A stretch of DNA of 64,000 bases, taken from the sequence record NC_007623.1. One strand, written 5' to 3'. The notes beneath the pieces are model-generated. The model ran no database searches. It was not told where the DNA came from and was given only the letters and a program-made list of their open reading frames with translations. Shown here in pieces: positions 6,754 to 54,277 of the stretch. Both the position numbers and the translations under genes were made by a program. How positions within the stretch are numbered: the stretch's first letter is position 1; the number at the start of each line of letters is the position of its first letter.

Positions 6754-7617
6754 ATGAAAGAAGAAAACCAGAAGAAGACCAACAGTTTCCAAGGTGGCGA
6801 TGTTCGGGTAGTGTCTTCTAAGACGCATCCCGGTAAATCGAAATTCCTCCCGGTAAACCTCATGGGACCGGATACGATCGAGAACCCTGACCAACTGGTC
6901 CTCCAAGTTCATCACCGTCTGACCGAAGGCCAGAAAGCGTTCTACCACACCCTGGAAACCTACGGGCTGTGTAAGGCCTACAGTTCGTCACCCGATCCCC
7001 GTACGTTGGTGATCAACATCGCTACCGGTCTTCCCCACACCAAGGAAGAGAAAGACGCTCCTCGCCGCAGCATCGAGCTGGACGCCGGCATTATCCTCTA
7101 TGCGGTTATCAGCGAACGGGAGGGTGGGGCCTTCAAAATCGTCATCGTGGGAACCGCTACCCATACGTCTTATTTGGTGATCCGTGAGGACGTTGCCTTC
7201 TCGTTTATCATCGATAAGGTGTCTTTGTCGGTTCAGGATGCGGTAGTCGCCCTGTACGCCAGCAACCTCAGCAAAGGTCGAGGGCTCTTCGAGAACACCG
7301 CTAAACACCTTCCGGACTTCTTCTACAAGCTGTTTAAAGCGGTCTTCCCGGAAATGGTTCGTCTGGAATTCACGATCACTCACATTCATGAAGACAGTGT
7401 TCGCGTTGCGCTGTACTGGGATCCTAGGGGACCTAACAAGAATCTCATTGCCTGCAATGGGTTTGTCTTCCCGTTGGACATTTCCCAGTTCCCGGGTAAA
7501 CAAATCTCCCGGGGGTATAACCTCCAGAAGAAAGAAACCCGTCATGTCGCTCACAAACAAAAGACATCTGACCTGTCAGTCAATACCCAGCGTCTGTTGG
7601 AAAAGTTCTCGAAATAG
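6754..7617 (+). CDS. hypothetical protein (287 aa)
   Basis: GAGGA RBS; operon context. Confidence 0.8.
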   Translation: MKEENQKKTNSFQGGDVRVVSSKTHPGKSKFLPVNLMGPDTIENPDQLVLQVHHRLTEGQKAFYHTLETYGLCKAYSSSPDPRTLVINIATGLPHTKEEKDAPRRSIELDAGIILYAVISEREGGAFKIVIVGTATHTSYLVIREDVAFSFIIDKVSLSVQDAVVALYASNLSKGRGLFENTAKHLPDFFYKLFKAVFPEMVRLEFTITHIHEDSVRVALYWDPRGPNKNLIACNGFVFPLDISQFPGKQISRGYNLQKKETRHVAHKQKTSDLSVNTQRLLEKFSK

Positions 7618-7700: not shown

Positions 7701-8201
7701 ATGAAAGGTACCCTACCCCATTACCAGATCAGAATTATCGCTAGAAGTGCCTTTACAGACGATTTAAAGGAGAGACTCAAACCACTGTATGAAAACCTCT
7801 TTCACCACGAACTCCATCTCGTCATTGGTACTAAAACAACCCGTAAGCTGTTTAAACCCTCCGCCCGTAAAAATCCCCACCCCTCCGTTATTGAGAAACG
7901 GTACGAAGACTTCTTCAAAGTAACCGACAAGATAGTACTCGTTACTCACTTGGGAGAAGCCGTGGGATATCTGGCGGTGGTTAAGAACAAGATCACCTCA
8001 CTCTTTGTTGAAGAAGACTTCCGGAAGCTAGGCTTAGGGCGGATCATGGTGTCCAAGTTACAACGGGGTGGACATCCTGTGAACCGGTTCCTCTACGTTC
8101 AATGCTTTACCCAGAATACAGCTGGTATCAACTTCTACCGGAAAGTTGGGTTTAAGGAAATTGACAGAGGAGAGATCTACACGGTTTTGTTAATGGAATA
8201 A
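7701..8201 (+). CDS. GNAT-family acetyltransferase
   Basis: Motif A ITSLFVEEDFRKLGLGR (Q/RxxGxG) and motif B NTAGINFYRKVGF. Confidence 0.85.
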   Translation: MKGTLPHYQIRIIARSAFTDDLKERLKPLYENLFHHELHLVIGTKTTRKLFKPSARKNPHPSVIEKRYEDFFKVTDKIVLVTHLGEAVGYLAVVKNKITSLFVEEDFRKLGLGRIMVSKLQRGGHPVNRFLYVQCFTQNTAGINFYRKVGFKEIDRGEIYTVLLME

Positions 8202-46148: not shown

Positions 46149-47591
46149 ATGAAACCGACTAACATTACCCTCTTAGACCCCCGGACGATTGTTCCGGGTG
46201 TCTTTAAACCTATTACGTCTACAGACTCATTTGAAGGGATGACCCAGAACCTCAATGATGACGGTCTCTTCTCCCTTGACATCTTCGGTAAACTGGGTAG
46301 TAAACAACGTGATAACACGGAAGCGTATATCGACGTTAAACTTCCCATCTTCAATCCCACTTACCTAAAAGCCCTTATACAGATCAAAAGTCTGTATCAT
46401 TCAATTTTGAAAGGGTCGGAATACGCGGTATGGGATCCCGAACTGAAGGATTTCATAAAATCGAACATCCTGGAAGGGGAAAAGGGTTTCGCCTTCTTCC
46501 TGAAACACTTCGATGAAACCGTCTTCTCCCTGACCCCCTCTCATAAACGCAAACAACGGGTAGAACTGGCGAACCAATTCCGTAACACGGCGTTAACGGA
46601 TAAGGTCCTGGTCATCCCCGCGGGTCTCAGGGATATCCAATTCAATCCAGATGGTTCCCACACCGAACCTGAAATCACTGAATTCTACCGCGCCTTAATG
46701 TTCCGGGTGAGAGTGATCCTCGGGAATAAGGAAGATGCCCTGAACCCCCTTTACGATACCGTTCGGTGGGGGGTACAGAATGCTTTCTTGGAATTGGATA
46801 ATTACCTCTTTGGTTTACTCCAGGGGAAAGGGGGTGTTCTCCAGCGTCGTATGTCCACCCGAGGGGTTCACAACAGCACCCGGAACGTCATTACCGCCCG
46901 TAAAGTCTCCAGGACACGTTTAGACTTCGACGACGGTGTAGGTCCTAACTCTGCGGACATGGGACTCTACCAAGCCCTGCTGAACTTCCCTTATGTCTGC
47001 ATCAATGCGTTAACCAACGGCTACCTTTCCAACATCTTCACCCCCAGCTCTCAAACCGCTAAGCTGGTGAATACCAAGACCCTGGAATACGAATACGCTG
47101 AAGTCTCCCCTGAGGTGGTAGAGAAATGGACCACCGCCACCGGGTTAATGAAACTCTTCAACGGGTTTGCCGATCCCTCCTTACGGAGTAAACCCATTGT
47201 CATTGAGTGGAAATACTTAGCCCTCATTTATGATGATGGGACTGATGTGTGTGTTCTCCATGACATCAACGATCTCCCTCAAGGGAAAGACCGTAAATGG
47301 GTGAAACCTATCACCTACATGGAACTCTTCTACTTGAGTTGCCACAGTGTCATCGAAGAACAGATTACAGGACAAACCCGGTATCCCATTACGGGGATTG
47401 GCTCTATCTTCCCGGCTAAGGTTAACCTACGTACCACCACCAATGCGAGCCAGCGGGTCATTCGTAATCCGATTGATTGGAGTGTGCGGGAAACCTGTAA
47501 ACGGTTCCCTAAACGTGAAGCCCACCCCGATTACTTCGATGCCATGTCCGTAGACCCCTCTAGAGAAGCTTTGCTCGACAGTGACCATGAT
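46149..47591 (+). CDS. rpoC: virion RNA polymerase beta-prime N-terminal subunit, exon 1 (phiKZ gp180-like)
   Basis: DGLFSLDIFG, VLVIPAGLRD, LQGKGGVLQRR, RYP; ends in DSDHD, the first half of the catalytic motif. Confidence 0.93.
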
Positions 47592-47621
47592 TAGATAGTG
47601 ATGCATGATATAAACTCACTA

Positions 47622-47673
47622 TACAACTCCTATTGTATGCGGAAGTGTTCGCATTCGACCATAAGGAGTTGTA
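47622..47673 (+). promoter_or_regulatory. hairpin sequestering the HNH ribosome-binding site, with internal TATG
   Basis: TACAACTCCT (47622-31) is perfectly complementary to AGGAGTTGTA (47664-73), which includes the Shine-Dalgarno. Confidence 0.7.
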
Positions 47674-47676
47674 AAG

Positions 47677-48948
47677 ATGCTAACGTGTTTTGGAAAGAAA
47701 TACGTGTTGTCTACAACCAACACGGTTTACAATGTCACCGATAAGACAGATGTTCCAGTCCATCGGATGACAGACGGGAATACGTTCTTCATCGCACGGG
47801 GCGATGAAAACGAACTGGTTAAGATCAAACTGGGGTTAATGATCCTCCATGGAGAAGGAAAGTTCCATCTTCCTCTCTCTGAATGGGAACAGGTGAAAGT
47901 AGGTTTTCTGGATGACGATACAGGAAACTTTGCAGCGGATAACCTTTACTTGGTCTATCCTGAAGAGGGCATCCCTTACCCTGAACTCTCTGGGTACTAC
48001 TACATCCCTGGGTTTGAACTCAACGCAATCAACCGAGACGGTGTGGTATACCGAACAGTTAGAAAGAATCTTTACCCACCGTATCTGGGTGGTAACACCG
48101 TTCCTAACAGTTTCTACCCCTTTGTTCGACTGGATGTGGTCAGTGGGGATGAACGCAAGTATGTCCACCGGCTACTGGCGGAGACCTTCGGTAAGCCGCC
48201 TAAGGGCTACCCCAAGCTACTGGTCGACCATAATGACGGTAACAAGATGAACTTCAAGCTCTTTAACTTGATTTGGGTTACCGCTAAGGACAACTCCTTC
48301 AAAGCGTACAACAATCAAGAAGCGAGAGCGGACAATAATCCCTTGGAGGTTTTTGACAGGGAATTAGGTCAAGTCTTTAAGTACGTCAGTCAAAATGAGT
48401 TTGCGAGAACCATGGAGGTGGATTCTTGGTGCATTAGTCTGGTACTCAAACGTCCTCGTTCAGTGTACAAGAACAGGTACGTTCTTCGTCGGAAGGGAGA
48501 TACACGTGACTTCCAAGAGATCTGGGACTATAAGCCCCCTGTGGGTAAGAAGATCCTTGCCCGGAATGTCTTCACCGGTGAAATCACGGTGTATAATTCA
48601 TTGGCGGAGGCCTCTAGAGCAACACAGGTAGGGACAACAGGCATCCTGACGTCCCTGAGTAACACCAACCCGAGATCCGCCTTTAAAGACCTTCAATTCA
48701 AGCGGGAGTCTGACGAGACCCCTTGGCCTGATTTGAATGAATACGAACTGGAATGCATCCGGCGCAAGATGCACCCTGCTACAGCTGTGTATGAAATGTT
48801 TGATTCGGTAACCCAGGAGACGTCGATTGTGTATGGCGTTGATGCAGTTACCCGAATCACCGGAGCCAATCCCCGTACCGTTATCGTTTGCGCACGAGAA
48901 GGTAAGTTGCTCCATTCCCGTTATCGTTTCAAGAAACTTACACGTTAA
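47677..48948 (+). CDS. intron-encoded HNH homing endonuclease with NUMOD1/IENR1-like repeats
   Basis: VHRLLAETF...VDHNDGNKMNFKLFNLIWVTAKDN; three C-terminal repeats such as VYNSLAEASRATQV. Confidence 0.92.
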   Translation: MLTCFGKKYVLSTTNTVYNVTDKTDVPVHRMTDGNTFFIARGDENELVKIKLGLMILHGEGKFHLPLSEWEQVKVGFLDDDTGNFAADNLYLVYPEEGIPYPELSGYYYIPGFELNAINRDGVVYRTVRKNLYPPYLGGNTVPNSFYPFVRLDVVSGDERKYVHRLLAETFGKPPKGYPKLLVDHNDGNKMNFKLFNLIWVTAKDNSFKAYNNQEARADNNPLEVFDRELGQVFKYVSQNEFARTMEVDSWCISLVLKRPRSVYKNRYVLRRKGDTRDFQEIWDYKPPVGKKILARNVFTGEITVYNSLAEASRATQVGTTGILTSLSNTNPRSAFKDLQFKRESDETPWPDLNEYELECIRRKMHPATAVYEMFDSVTQETSIVYGVDAVTRITGANPRTVIVCAREGKLLHSRYRFKKLTR

Positions 48949-49363
48949 CGAGTTTATATCCATCACTTAGTCCGGCTAGGCACGAAAGTCCTAGACCGTA
49001 TTCCTCTGAATTGCTGGGAGTTCACAAAAGTCTGTTGGCTACAACGTAACTGGAAACAGTAAGCGTGAATGCGACCGAAAGGTAGAAAGAACAACAGACC
49101 TGACCTACGCTAACCAATAACGCTAAGGGTCGTAAACAAGGGACAATCAGCCGCTAAGACGCTACCGGGTATTAAACCCTATGCGTAAAGTTCAACGACT
49201 AAGGGAGTTATGACCCTGTACACCTACCAAGGAAGGGGGTGGAAGTGGAGGAGACCTAAGGGGGAATAGACCTATTCCCTACGGTCAAGATATAGTCTGG
49301 CCCTGTTTAATAAACAGGCAGGCACCTGAGTGTGCCGGGTCCTAGTACGGACTGACCACCGCG

Positions 49364-49546
49364 GGCGATCAATTGTCGAGCCATTCTGTTGTAGCGGAAG
49401 ACAGCAAACAACAGGCCTACGAACTCTTTGGGAAACGGGAGTATTACATCAGTGGTACGGGTCGGTTTTTGTACGATCCGATCAATGAACCGATTCTCTT
49501 TATGTTTAAAGCAGCGACGAGCGGCTTAGAGGATATTGAGGTATGA
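49364..49546 (+). CDS. rpoC: virion RNAP beta-prime N-terminal subunit, exon 2 (60 aa, absent from the ORF track)
   Basis: Reads GDQLSSHSVVAEDSKQQAYELFGKREYYISGTGRFLYDPINEPILFMFKAATSGLEDIEV*; completes DHDGD; stop overlaps the next ATG (ATGA). Confidence 0.9.
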   Translation, partial: GDQLSSHSVVAEDSKQQAYELFGKREYYISGTGRFLYDPINEPILFMFKAATSGLEDIEV

Positions 49547-52500
49547 GCAATCCAATTACGTATTCCGAGTTCTTTAAGCACTTTGTGCTGCGTAAGAAAC
49601 AAGACGTTGTAAACCCTAAAGTCCTGGGTATTGGTGAAGTGATCCTTCCTAAGGGGAGTTTACTGCACTTCGTACCGAAGACGATTAACGAAAAGGGACC
49701 GGGTAGTAGTGAAGCGTTTATCAGTAACTTCCCTAAAGAGGTCTTTATTGAGTTTGTAAGGGACGGGTATAAGCCGGTGATGGGGCATGGGCGGACAGTC
49801 GCCTATGACTACCCTAAGGCGGTTAAGGCGTACCGGGCGAGTCACTACATGTACAGCTGGGTGCGAGAGATCAGCACGGTGTACAACAAAGAGAACGTGT
49901 TGGTCGTTAAGAACTACGGGATGATTCCTCAGGGGTTCGTTTACCGTCCGAGTATTTTCGTGAATTATGAAAAATACTACAACATGATGCACCTGCTCAT
50001 TGAGAACATCAATGCAGAAGCCGAGAAAGGGGTGCGTCGGCAGTATATGCGGATTGACCTGCCGTTGAACCTGCCGTCCCTGGTTGAGCTTGAGAAAGAC
50101 TACGGACGGTTTATTGATGGGTTTAATGATGGGCATCCTGTCCTGATGCGCAATATGTTGGAGAGTACGAAGGCTGAGAACTGCTATTGGCTGTTGGACC
50201 TACTGGGGTTCCTGTTTGGCCAGTATTCGTTCAGTTTGTTCGGTAAACTCACCGACCAGGCGTATAAGGATTTGCATATCCTCTTTACGTCACAAAGTAA
50301 AGTCATTGTAGTACAACTGGGGCTGTTGAAGGGTTGGTTAGATGAAACAAATCCTAAAGACGAGAAAACCTACCCCTCTGCTCGGAAAGAGTTTGAAAGT
50401 CTGAAGACATTGACCCGCCATAATGCGGTTAAACGTTTCTATTTGGCTTTGATGAATCTTTCTCGTGGAGGCGTTCCTGAGAATGTACTCATTAAAGAGG
50501 AAACGAAAAATGTCATCCCAATTGCCGGAGAGAAAGGTACCGTTGACCAAGTGGCTGCGGGAACGTCACGAGAAGAAGAAGAAGAAACATCCAATCTTCC
50601 AGAAACCCGAGACCATACTGGCTCGGGCACGGTTCCCCGTGCTGATCGTCCTGCTGGTTCTATCCTTGATGTTTTCAGCCGAAGTGAAGGACCTGGCGAG
50701 GCACATGACGAAGAGCAAGACACAGCGGGAGAACGAGGTGCTGATTCAAATCTTGAAGAGTGGACATCGCCGGTAGATGATGAACTGCTGGAGGTGGAGA
50801 AAGTCCAAACCGAGATCAATACCAACAAGAATGTGTTTAAGACGCCTGAGAGTGGTGTAAAGCGGGCGTTGGAGGAGCGGGCTAAGGAAGGTACGCTGAC
50901 GGTGGCTGAACATGATTTCTTCATGCGTAAAGCGACCCGTTATCAGCACATTGAGATGGAGAACGGTCAAACGTTCGAAGAGTTCATTCAGATCAAACCC
51001 GAAGAGGTTAAAGACCTGGGTGGAGAGATTGAAGGTGAGTTTCTCCCCGTACTGGATGAGAGCATGTTGCGGAGTCGTGCCAAATCCCTCAAGATCGAAT
51101 ATCCTCAGAAGTTTTTACACCGGGATATTGGTCGAATGGTGTTGGGTCTTCAGAACGCTGGCTTTGCGATGAACGACTACCGGCGTGAGAAGGTCGTCAG
51201 CGTAGAAGGCAGTTACGAGGTCCACAGCATTCAGTTACACGAAGTCAATGGTGATCAGGTCACTGTACATACTCGGTTGCCTACGGTGCTGAAAGACGGC
51301 ACCTACGTCATTGATGGTGTTAAGCAACACATGCAACTGCAACGTCGGGAGAAACCTTTCCGGAAGATCAGTCCTCGGGAAGTGGTGCTGTCGAGCTATT
51401 ACGACCGTAAGCTCATGGTGAGTCGTAGTCCGAAGATGGTGGATAACCTCTCTACGTTCATGGTGAAGCAAATCTCCCTCCAGAGTAAGCGGAAAGGGTA
51501 TACGGTCACTAAAGGCAGTACGTGGGATCGCTCCCTTAAAGCCCCCCGGATTTACAGCATTCTGGCTCGTCAGTACAAGTACATTACTGTCGACGGGTTG
51601 GTATTGGACTTCCGGTTGAAGGATCTCCTGGAACTCCACCCTGAGTTCAAAGCCTATACCCGCCCTGATCGGTTCTTGATTGGGGTAAAAGACGGATTAC
51701 CTTTGATCATTGATGATTACGGTAACCTGTACAAAGGGGAAGAGGAACTCGGTACTGTTGAAGACTTGCTCGGTATTGATGTTCGTAAAGCGCCTTTGGA
51801 ACACGTGGTGATTAACATCAGCGGGTATTCGTTTCCGTTGGGAGTGGTCCTGTGCTTCTACTTCGGTATTGATGAACTGTTGCGGGTGATTAAAGCCACG
51901 ACGCGTTCGGTACCCGTAGGGACTCGCCCTAAATTGACGGAGGATGAATACGCGATTCAGTTCAATGACGAATACTTGATCTTTAACCGTCGGGAGAAGC
52001 TCACCACGTTGATCTTCGGTGGAATGCCGAAGTTGAACAACATCAGTAACTTCAGTCGGAGTGATTTGAATAATAACAGTATTTGGAGTGCGTTAATGGG
52101 AGACCCTCGGGTTCGCCCATCTCAGTTCCAGGAAATGAAGAACCTCTTCGATCTCTTTATCGATCCCATTACGAAAGACCTCTTGAAAGAGATGAAGCTG
52201 TCTGAAGACTTCCATTACTTGCTGATTGATGCGGCTAAGGCATTGGAAACGGATTACAGTCGACACGAGGTGGAGATTGAAGAGCAACGCATTGTAGGGT
52301 ATGAACGCTTCGCGGGTCATCTCTACACGGAATTTGTAAAGTCCATTCGTCAATACCGGAATAAGGGGAAAGGACGTAAACACAAACTGGACTTTAATCC
52401 GGACGCGGTTATTATTGCCATTGGTACTGACCGGTCTACGAACTTGGTGGAGGAAGTGAATCCAGTTCACCAAGTGAAGGACCAAGAGGAAGTGACGTTT

Positions 52501-52743
52501 GGGGGTACGGGTGGTCGTAGTGAAATCACCATGGTCAAACGCGCACGGACTCAGCTGGAGAGTTACAAAGGGGTCATCAGTGAAGCCAACAAGGACAGTG
52601 GTAAAGTGGGGTATGTGACCTACACCACCTCTGATCCGGGTATCGCTGATTTCCGAGGCAATGTTGATCCCAAGAACAAACGTACTCCTACCGGTGACGG
52701 TTCGGTAACTATGAACCTGATGTACGGTGGAACGCATGACGAT
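49543..52743 (+). CDS. rpoB: virion RNA polymerase beta N-terminal subunit, exon 1 (phiKZ gp178-like)
   Basis: VIDGVKQHMQLQ, EVNPVHQV...VTFGGTGGR, SEANKDSGKVG; ends in GTHDD. Confidence 0.92.
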
Positions 52744-53158
52744 TGAGCTGTTGTGAAAACAATAGATCACTCAGTCCAACCAGGGAGTAATCCCTTGTTG
52801 CCATTACCTTTAATTGCGGGAACCTACTGAGAGCCTTATCTACCAAACCCGAGCAGGAAACCAACGGGTGGCCAACCATAACGGGTTGGGGACGGTAATA
52901 ACGATAAGGATTGGGGAACCCTACGCAGCGAAGCACCTACGTATTGTCGAGAGGACAAGATAGGGTGAACGTTCAACGACTACGGATGAAATTTCCGGTA
53001 GAGGTGTCAGGATGATACTTCCAAAAGTAAGGTTGCCCTGTATGCTTGAGGTGTGAATAACACTGAGTACAGGGATGAAATATAGTCTCGTCATCTAAGG
53101 GAAAACCTTAGAGCGTGGTGCTACGCGCACCGGCGGATAGGATATCCGTGAAGAAACG
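52744..53158 (+). mobile_element. ORF-less group I intron (415 nt)
   Basis: P1 ACGAU/GUUGU; P AATTGCGGGAA 52812, R GTTCAACGACTAC 52971, S GAAATATAGTCT 53077; terminal G 53158. Confidence 0.93.
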
Positions 53159-54277
53159 GTCAAACGAGCAGTATTCACATCGACTCAGGCCTCTCAAGCA
53201 GTGATGGCTAAGAACTACGAGATCGTTACCCTGAGAACGGGTTACGAGAATGTACTGGCTCACCGGACCTCTGACCTCTACAGCAAAGTAGCCGCTGAAG
53301 ATGGTAAGGTCACTAAAGTGGAGAACGATCGCTTACTCGTCGAATACAAGGACGGAACAACGGACTCGTATCCCTTGGGGTTGGTGATTGGGGAAGCCAG
53401 TGGGGAATATCATCCCCACAGCCGTACCACAGATCTGAAGGTCGGAGATACCTTCCGTAAGGGAGATGTCATCGGTTGGGATGAAAACTGGTTCGGTCGA
53501 GATCCCTTCTGCCCAGGGCAAGTCGGGGTTAAGATGGGTAAAATGTGCCAGATCGTTATGGTGGAAGATCAGGATGTGTACGAGGACTCTATTGCAATTT
53601 CGAAAGAATTGGCGATGGAAGCACGTACCCCATTCATTAAACCCAGTCGGTTTGCCGAGGACGTGTCAAACAACCTGGTAATGCGGGTTAAGGTAGGAGA
53701 TTACGTCGAACAGGACACGATTTTATGTGATATCGAAGAGCCTCACTTGGTGGAGGGCGAGGAGCTTCCTGAGCTCGAAGCAGACATCAACAAACTCGGT
53801 ATCAAACAGATCCGTTCGAAGCATCATGGAAAGATCGTACACATCGATGTTCGGTACAACTCTCCCTTAGACAAGATGTCTGACTCGTTCCGTTCGTTCA
53901 TTGTTCAGAAGGATAAGGAAACGAAACGGAAAGGGTTGGTGGAAGGAACCGGTGTCGAGAACAATGCCATTTCCACGATGTTCAATCTTAATCGTCCCAT
54001 GTTAGGTCCAGGTAAGGCGTTCATTACGTTCTACATCGAGTCGTTAGACCCGAGTACCAATGCGGATAAGTATGTCATTGGGAACCAGATGAAAGCCACT
54101 GTGGGTCGTATCATGGAAAGACCGCTTAAGACCGCCAGTGGGATTGTCATTGATGTGAAGTCGAGCTTTAAAGGGATGTTTAACCGAATGGTGCTCAGTT
54201 TGAGGAACAAGCTGGTTGCTAACGAGTATGGTTACCAAATCACTCGCCAGGCCATTAAACTCTACAGAGGTAAATAA
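53159..54277 (+). CDS. rpoB: virion RNA polymerase beta N-terminal subunit, exon 2 (372 aa)
   Basis: Starts VKRAVFTSTQASQAV, in frame with track ORF 53201; EDSIAIS, VKVGDYV, DKYVIGNQMKATVG correspond to bacterial beta motifs. Confidence 0.92.
   Translation, partial: VKRAVFTSTQASQAVMAKNYEIVTLRTGYENVLAHRTSDLYSKVAAEDGKVTKVENDRLLVEYKDGTTDSYPLGLVIGEASGEYHPHSRTTDLKVGDTFRKGDVIGWDENWFGRDPFCPGQVGVKMGKMCQIVMVEDQDVYEDSIAISKELAMEARTPFIKPSRFAEDVSNNLVMRVKVGDYVEQDTILCDIEEPHLVEGEELPELEADINKLGIKQIRSKHHGKIVHIDVRYNSPLDKMSDSFRSFIVQKDKETKRKGLVEGTGVENNAISTMFNLNRPMLGPGKAFITFYIESLDPSTNADKYVIGNQMKATVGRIMERPLKTASGIVIDVKSSFKGMFNRMVLSLRNKLVANEYGYQITRQAIKLYRGK

Follow-up and report, generated by a model that had tools for sequence, protein, structure and literature searches.

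Group I introns in the genes of the virion RNA polymerase (RNAP) of jumbo phages have been described at two sites, one in the N-terminal half of the beta' subunit (site 1) and one in the beta subunit (site 2), and here we compare with them the corresponding gene pair of Pseudomonas phage EL (EL ORF184 to ORF187). We refer to the whole stretch of DNA that was analyzed (64,000 nucleotides (nt) of record NC_007623.1, genome positions 147216-211215 of EL) as the window, and coordinates are window positions on the + strand unless stated otherwise. In phiKZ the gp180/gp179 intron (Mesyanzhinov 2002 and Ceyssens 2014, as cited in PMC11512511) lies in the virion RNAP beta' N-half gene, and the layout is that of EL: exon 1, an HNH open reading frame (ORF), a ribozyme core (92 bits, Rfam), a short hidden exon 2 and the beta gene (gp178). 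Like intron 1 of EL, it follows a GAU Asp codon and opens with an in-frame stop (UAA in phiKZ). However, the phiKZ insertion is 6 nt upstream (D|FDGD, compared with DxDxD|GD in EL), gp179 is only 26% identical to the EL endonuclease gp185, and the phiKZ beta gene has no intron.

The gp210 intron of PhiPA3, in the virion RNAP beta gene (gp211/gp209), is like EL intron 2 a group I intron placed directly after two conserved Asp residues, a pair that Birkholz et al. (2024) equate with E. coli RpoB D675, and its HNH enzyme nicks the intron-less phiKZ allele and provides a competitive advantage (PMC11620839). Unlike this site-2 intron with its HNH nickase, EL intron 2 has no ORF, and the PhiPA3 beta' gene (gp212) is uninterrupted. 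An intron in the beta gene is also known for 201phi2-1 (gp273/274), based on proteomics and two spliced reads (PMC11512511); it was compared with EL by its description in the literature. Both sites of the operon are interrupted, as in EL, in FishSpeaker (Shewanella), phiKp_32 and VB_ZK_P1 (Klebsiella/Raoultella). FishSpeaker shares with EL an HNH ORF at site 1 and an ORF-less insert at site 2, while the order is reversed in phiKp_32 and VB_ZK_P1 has ORFs in both. The insertion points of these phages are displaced from those of EL by +6 nt at site 1 and +10 nt at site 2, except that site 1 of phiKp_32 is identical to that of EL.

Both sites are, then, already known and recurrent, the selfish introns in them are of known kinds, and the EL genome has been published: its genome paper is cited for introns in jumbo phages by a 2026 review, and ORF185 was already noted in the original EL record as a putative intron-encoded HNH endonuclease. 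The region 46149-54277 matches AJ697969 / NC_007623 (genome 193364-201492) at 100% identity and seven other Elvirus records at 97.8-99% identity; according to one related record, Elvirus belongs to the Chimalliviridae, the nucleus-forming jumbo phages. A model that read the DNA alone had proposed that two introns of parallel design gate the virion RNAP and that the second spreads by co-conversion with the first (the original prediction). We conclude that, very probably, the adjacent virion RNAP beta' N-half and beta genes of EL each carry a selfish group I intron, the two being unrelated and acquired independently of each other. What stands of the original prediction is that the gene pair holds two real introns, both of which have to be removed; the special design and the co-conversion are not supported.

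Exons and introns of the beta' and beta genes

Exon 1 of the beta' N-half gene (EL ORF184) spans 46149-47591 (481 codons, ending in the residues D-S-D-H-D) and matches PHROG 2986 with an E value of 9e-193, the ORF 46149-47594 covering profile positions 5-486 of 539. Exon 2 (49364-49546; 60 codons and a TGA stop) starts with G-D-Q-L and was recognized by tblastn matches to 68 phage records; it is contiguous with exon 1 in intron-less phages. Exon 1 of the beta gene (EL ORF186; 49543-52743) has 1067 codons, ends in H-D-D and matches PHROG 3148 (E 0), while exon 2 (53159-54277; 372 codons and a stop) starts with V-K-R-A-V and is colinear with the uninterrupted gene of phage GXNNE2. Along the 1424 positions of PHROG 3148, the ORF 49543-52746 occupies 2-1050 and the frame 53201-54277 occupies 1065-1423. 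The two genes are homologs of phiKZ gp180 and gp178, respectively, which are virion-packaged RNAP subunits. The full-length products would have 481+60 amino acids (beta' N-half) and 1067+372 amino acids (beta), and each can be made only after removal of an intron, which we infer occurs by self-splicing of the pre-mRNA at both sites.

The exons were used separately as search queries, never as a joined protein, and neither a phmmer search of the two large exons against PDB nor a Pfam and NCBIfam search of the RNAP exons gave a match. Only a family profile built from full-length, intron-less homologs of the first gene reached RNAP beta' chains in PDB, with AR9 (7S01_d) at an E value of 2e-12 and bacterial beta' chains at about 1e-4. 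This profile aligns GGDFDGDQL with the AR9 motif GDYDGDVL, and the alignment of exon 1 stops at the third catalytic Asp. The beta' catalytic Asp-triad motif (NADFDGD type) is restored across intron 1 as DSDHD|GDQ. Based on the profile and motif matches, the gene order beta' then beta given in the original prediction is correct.

Intron 1 is a 1772-nt element at 47592-49363 that begins with an in-frame UAG and ends with G. Its limits follow from the fact that in the intron-less phages Joad, N1M2, AH04, LAh10 and pAEv1810 the tblastn match to residue 481 of exon 1 abuts that to residue 7 of the frame starting at 49346, so that the protein junction is D-S-D-H-D|G-D-Q-L, directly past the third catalytic Asp. 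The ribozyme core (P2-P9) at 48945-49317 matches the Rfam group I intron model RF00028, for which the gathering score is 50 bits, with 51.1 bits (E 4.6e-10) over model positions 1-253. It has the conserved R (GUUCAaAGACUA, at 49190-49201) and S (AAGAUAUAGUC) elements, and is followed by two more 3' hairpins up to 49363; we read the insertion that separates the R element from P3' as P7.1/P7.2 of subgroup IA. For ViennaRNA folding the 5' and 3' parts of the intron were joined with the ORF interior removed, and as the fold of the core was not trustworthy only the P1 duplex and local hairpins were kept. In the predicted P1, the 5' strand (47589-47603, comprising the exon GAU and intron nt) pairs with the internal guide sequence at 48961-48972 in a duplex of 5 base pairs (bp), a 3-nt bulge and 7 bp (-11.6 kcal/mol). 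The splice-site pairing itself would be GAU|UA with UUAGUC (48967-48972), lengthened by the 7-bp helix. The putative wobble pair U47591-G48970 in P1 and the terminal G49363 agree with the group I end rules.

The P1 loop of intron 1 contains the HNH homing endonuclease gene (EL ORF185, 423 amino acids; 47677-48948). This 1.27-kb ORF is the only endonuclease ORF of the two introns, as the original prediction had noted.

Intron 2 (52744-53158) is 415 nt long, begins with an in-frame UGA and ends with G53158. Its ends are set by alignment to GXNNE2, the beta gene of which is uninterrupted (1439 amino acids) and 415 nt shorter; both GXNNE2 and the sequences of a public run, X2, lack exactly 52744-53158 and are otherwise colinear with EL. 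The resulting protein junction is H-D-D|V-K-R. In the minimum-free-energy fold, P1 (52741-52776) is formed by GAU|UGAG (52741-52747) with CUCAGUC (52770-52776), including the wobble pair U52743-G52774; this duplex has a predicted stability of -9.2 kcal/mol, and there is a small hairpin within the P1 loop.

Both pairs of boundaries recur in contigs of a second public run, X1, which join 47591 to 49364 (a 1772-nt skip) and 52743 to 53159 (a 415-nt skip) exactly. X1 is a small run labelled as wastewater metagenomic RNA-Seq, in which EL-like sequence has a depth of 17-22 over 47400-53300 and the intron interiors have a lower depth. Whatever the nature of the joined forms, they fix the intron boundaries. 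We give practically no weight to the alternative that there are no introns and that the locus represents a genuine fission of the genes into subunits with a free-standing HNH gene and non-coding spacers, which would fit the public annotation of the pieces as separate coding sequences (CDSs) and the splitting of RNAP subunits into N and C halves elsewhere in this phage family, but not the Rfam group I matches with complete coverage of the model (1-253), the U that precedes each insert and the G that ends it, the position of the breaks inside DxDxD|GD and DD|VKR with colinear uninterrupted genes in relatives, the absence of a start codon of its own from beta' exon 2 at 49364, or the exact skips in X1.

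Junction features shared by the two introns

The original prediction had regarded the junctions of the two introns as a parallel design. Its descriptions are accurate: both 5' exons end in the Asp codon GAT (47589-47591 and 52741-52743), and the introns open in frame with TAG and TGA. In addition, a 12-nt sequence, GTTCAACGACTA, is present in both introns (49190-49201 and 52971-52982) and at only these two places in the window; if up to one mismatch is allowed, the number expected by chance is 0.38, and 5 of 100 shuffled sequences have at least two matches. None of this is special, however, since the stops, the U before the splice site and the 12-nt sequence are generic to group I introns. In such introns the last exon position has to be a U, and GAU occurs at both sites because this requirement is combined with targets that are conserved Asp codons. 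For introns in protein-coding genes, an in-frame stop at the start is a described trait, with a presumed role in stalling ribosomes (PMC3984707). Such a stop also begins a third intron of EL (GCU|UAA) and the introns of phiKZ gp180 (GAU|UAA), phiKp_32 (GAU|UGA) and VP4B (GAU|UAA), while in FishSpeaker, at site 1 of PS1 and CF8, and in intron 2 of MIZ-Pa99 the in-frame stop comes later than the intron start. In GTTCAACGACTA we recognize the conserved R element of the group I core, which includes one P7 strand; it equals the Rfam consensus GUUCAaAGACUA. It was found in 21 of the 29 fetched loci, a set that includes intron-bearing loci of ten other phages; the intron-bearing loci fetched are from phages of Klebsiella, Raoultella, Aeromonas, Vibrio, Photobacterium and Bacillus, as well as from phiKZ, PhiPA3 and OMKO1.

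The possibility that the introns are copies of each other was rejected, as their cores are 62% identical in a permissive global alignment, which is within the range of shuffled controls (59-63%).

Site occupancy in relatives and the possible spread of intron 2

We surveyed the occupancy of the two sites by tblastn of the exon ends, fetched loci and Rfam scans, and found all four possible combinations. Both sites are filled in six EL-type genomes, FishSpeaker, phiKp_32, VB_ZK_P1, CF8 and PS1, and among these FishSpeaker has an HNH ORF at site 1 only, phiKp_32 at site 2 only, VB_ZK_P1 has ORFs at both and CF8 and PS1 at neither. Site 1 alone is filled in GXNNE2/GXNNA8, run X2, VP4B, PDCC-1 and phiKZ, and site 2 alone in PhiPA3. 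Both sites are empty in Joad, RisingSun, Miami and relatives, N1M2, AH04, Aphrodite1, pTD1, phiKT1019/1028, the LAh10 group, Yubaba and pAEv1810. The insertion points fall at no fewer than four positions within the 15 nt encoding D-x-D-x-D-G-D, and in the beta gene they fall at either of two positions, directly at DD| or 10 nt past it.

Based on these results, we suggest the following account of the EL introns. Each sits in unchangeable DNA encoding essential Asp residues, namely the Mg-binding DxDxD motif of beta' and the DD pair of beta, and homing endonucleases target such invariant stretches. Intron 1 would be a complete mobile element, the HNH enzyme of which may cut intron-less beta' alleles so that the intron is copied in by repair. 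Intron 2 would be a non-autonomous passenger that is inherited vertically and gained or lost independently of intron 1. Should intron 2 be mobile at all, this would most likely be through a site-2-specific endonuclease acting in trans, of the kind of PhiPA3 gp210 or that of phiKp_32, an enzyme that EL itself does not encode. In this regard, gp185 shares 33-36% identity, along its whole length, with the ORFs in the site-1 introns of VB_ZK_P1, FishSpeaker and PDCC-1, but only 24-28% with the site-2 enzymes (PhiPA3 gp210, with 28% over 223 amino acids, and phiKp_32 2450), which form a separate group. Since gp185 groups with the site-1 enzymes, EL has no cognate site-2 enzyme, and a search for a site-2-type endonuclease elsewhere in EL found none.

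Several observations weigh against two independently acquired introns that are spliced from the EL transcript. The match of intron 2 to RF00028 (52709-53113; 40.5 bits, E 6.4e-08) is below the gathering score, although it covers the full model (1-253) and includes the R and S elements. The P1 and guide pairings of both introns were each predicted from one sequence and lack support from covariation. The joined forms in X1, rather than being spliced RNA, could represent DNA of strains that lack the introns, and they do not prove splicing in infected cells; in phiKZ, the homologous intron (that of gp179) showed no splicing by ONT-cappable-seq in the conditions that were used. Lastly, the occupancies of the two sites are positively associated: of 22 genome clusters, 6 have both sites filled, 4 only site 1, 1 only site 2 and 11 neither. 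A one-sided Fisher test done by hand gives a p of about 0.015, which ignores kinship and the fact that loci were partly picked for intron hits, and is a hint that leaves room for linked spread.

The best of the alternatives concerns only the history of intron 2, which might be a decayed mobile intron that has lost a site-2 HNH gene like that of PhiPA3 gp210 and is heading to precise loss; we consider this possible, if rather unlikely. The original prediction had also mentioned the loss of an ORF. ORF-bearing introns do occur at the same DD| site (PhiPA3) and 10 nt downstream (phiKp_32 and VB_ZK_P1), and their ORFs occupy the 5' portion of the intron; the corresponding portion of EL intron 2 has only a 22-nt loop between the P1 strands. 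Goddard and Burt, in 1999, reportedly described a homing cycle of gain, ORF decay and loss, and Elvirus alleles without intron 2 exist, as such a cycle predicts. However, no ORF remnant is visible in the 415 nt, and the nearest non-Elvirus relative of the intron 2 core is not that of PhiPA3 but an intron at a different site in the beta homolog of the Bacillus jumbo phage AgentSmith (74.6% identity over 176 nt). Moreover, the lack of an ORF does not equate with immobility or decay, based on the ORF-less inserts at both sites of the Aeromonas phages PS1 and CF8. These phages belong to different genera, and their inserts share 91-92% identity, compared with about 69% for the surrounding genes; pAEv1810, of the same genus as PS1, has neither insert. 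This pattern of identity indicates recent horizontal movement of ORF-less elements.

A linked route of spread is improbable in our estimation, but the occupancies are not fully independent, the beta' site being filled in almost all phages of this clade in which the beta site is filled, and both sites being filled or empty together within two genera. One possibility for such a route would be that endonuclease-induced recombination at one site raises the uptake of a nearby ORF-less intron, and another would be that co-infecting phages exchange trans-acting, site-specific nickases from a common pool within hybrid phage nuclei.

The full model of the original prediction, in which a designed double gate acts on the virion RNAP, translation of beta is tied to the first splice and intron 2 co-converts after gp185 cuts at site 1, is in our view very improbable. 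It has in its favor that both subunits need splicing, that the two sites tend to be filled together, and that both are filled or both empty within two genera (PS1 compared with pAEv1810, and phiKp_32/VB_ZK_P1 compared with Miami). The proposed translational coupling is based on an ATGA at 49543-49546, in which the stop of beta' exon 2 overlaps the ATG of beta. This overlap is real but not particular to a spliced operon, as it is also found in the intron-less Klebsiella phage Miami, and a GAGGA 8 nt upstream of the beta ATG means that beta could initiate alone. Furthermore, the Chimalliviridae separate transcription from translation (PMC12908238), and there is therefore time for splicing before any ribosome arrives.

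The movement of an ORF-less intron by an endonuclease encoded elsewhere also has real precedents, namely the trans homing of the T4 nrdB intron, a defunct intron that is moved by the neighboring endonuclease MobE (PMC2790892), and the collaborative homing of cyanophages (PMC3984707). In T4 the maximum for co-conversion is about 2 kb (PMC2790892). The T4 and cyanophage systems differ from EL in that their cut site and passenger intron coincide or are no more than about 2 kb apart, whereas the sole nearby endonuclease of EL targets a site 3.4 kb away; in an intron-less recipient, the exon between the two insertion sites would be 3380 nt. A further difference is that natural genomes separate the two EL elements. 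GXNNE2, GXNNA8 and X2 keep intron 1 with gp185 and have no intron 2, while phiKZ and PhiPA3 have one filled site each. The distribution across relatives was the observation on which the original prediction had itself made the linkage depend, and the finding of the introns apart from each other weakens co-conversion.

Sister genomes likewise provide no support for co-conversion, as no donor tract was present between the sites in the pairs PS1/pAEv1810 or phiKp_32/Miami. The 3.3 kb that separate the sites are not more diverged than their surroundings: identity of PS1 to pAEv1810 is 92.7% there, compared with 94.3% and 90.2% in the two flanks, and identity of phiKp_32 to Miami is 97.1%, compared with 97.3% and 97.4%. 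Only about 150-600 nt beside each site are more diverged, a pattern that fits separate short-tract events. Elvirus genomes themselves are sub-kb recombination mosaics, and the two sites are therefore not tightly linked. No co-conversion tract around the Elvirus introns stands out among these mosaics, the only intron-linked differences being two synonymous changes just past site 2.

The finding of two very probably unrelated introns leaves the understanding of group I introns unchanged. EL represents a further case of the picture known from PhiPA3 and phiKZ, in which intron endonucleases are aimed at virion RNAP genes in the competition between co-infecting jumbo phages. The by-products of the analysis are exact exon coordinates that are missing from public annotations, a natural intron-2 polymorphism in Elvirus and a comparative map of insertion points; in addition, since intron 2 is present in some natural Elvirus isolates and absent from others, these provide a pair of laboratory strains for measuring whether an ORF-less intron can be mobilized, and by what.

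The endonuclease gp185, annotation and minor observations

The HNH motif of gp185 (residues 161-207) matches Pfam HNH_3 (PF13392) with an E value of 4.7e-11, and the protein also matches PHROG 59 (E 6.7e-50) and I-HmuI (1U3E; E 0.0013, residues 151-207). The enzyme is probably an I-HmuI-like nickase, and site-specific nicking of an intron-less allele is known for its distant relative PhiPA3 gp210 (PMC11620839). The Shine-Dalgarno sequence of its gene (47663-47668) lies inside a 9-bp stem (47623-47631 with 47664-47672) of a sequestering hairpin at 47623-47672, predicted as a local minimum-free-energy fold, and the stem is almost invariant in seven Elvirus genomes. This hairpin resembles the known translational control of T4 I-TevI. 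The first nt of intron 1 (47595-47603) have two alternative pairings, one local with 47616-47622 (7 bp) and one with 48961-48967 (7 bp) that extends P1 and spans the 1.36-kb ORF loop; a folding switch between expression of the endonuclease and splicing is possible.

EL has only two HNH genes of the gp185 family, the second of which is in its third group I intron. This intron is outside the window (genome 29669-31112; locus L004, about 489-1932), scores 54.9 bits, has a 337-amino-acid HNH ORF and splits the non-virion RNAP beta' gene at Y-N-A|D-F-D-G-D, after a U. All three EL introns are therefore in RNAP genes, and two are in the catalytic Asp motif of the two beta' paralogs.

The exons are left unjoined in every public record of the nine Elvirus genomes. 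In the EL records beta' exon 2 is missing from the annotations, with the consequence that the annotated beta' N-half protein lacks the residues past the third catalytic Asp, and the annotated start of ORF187 is an internal ATG (53204) downstream of the true start of beta exon 2. In HHBS8_1 (locus L012, 1501-2944) a 2-nt gap relative to the otherwise identical HHBS47_1, probably a sequencing error, has led to two overlapping CDS annotations for beta' exon 1. A scan for promoters and terminators gave no excess over chance and no + strand terminator between the genes.

The codons immediately after site 2 (53159-53164) are GTC AAA in all Elvirus genomes with intron 2, compared with GTG AAG in GXNNE2 and GTA AAG in X2, which lack it. 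These changes are synonymous and limited to the first 6 nt of the 3' exon, and they fit a homing-site or co-conversion footprint. In MIZ-Pa99 (locus L009, about 8096-8115) the first ~11 nt of intron 2 differ, with a 4-nt deletion and a bulged P1, and the in-frame stop is shifted to the sixth codon past the splice site; this copy may be a genuine variant or may result from misassembly. The AgentSmith intron (locus L028, 2173-3862) is at a C-terminal site (G-I-G-D|), after GAU, and has a UAA start and an HNH-like ORF.

The small inserts at site 1 of CF8 and PS1 and at site 2 of FishSpeaker have no match to RF00028 at an E value of 0.01. They are 257 nt (L015, 2153-2409), 258 nt (L016, 1723-1980) and 341 nt (L013, about 7159-7499) long, respectively, and as their removal keeps the reading frame in all three cases, they may be very compact or divergent introns. 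In PDCC-1 (locus L017, about 1850-1860), beta' exon 1 seems to end after G-G-D, without the Y-D-G-D codons that precede the intron in its relatives.

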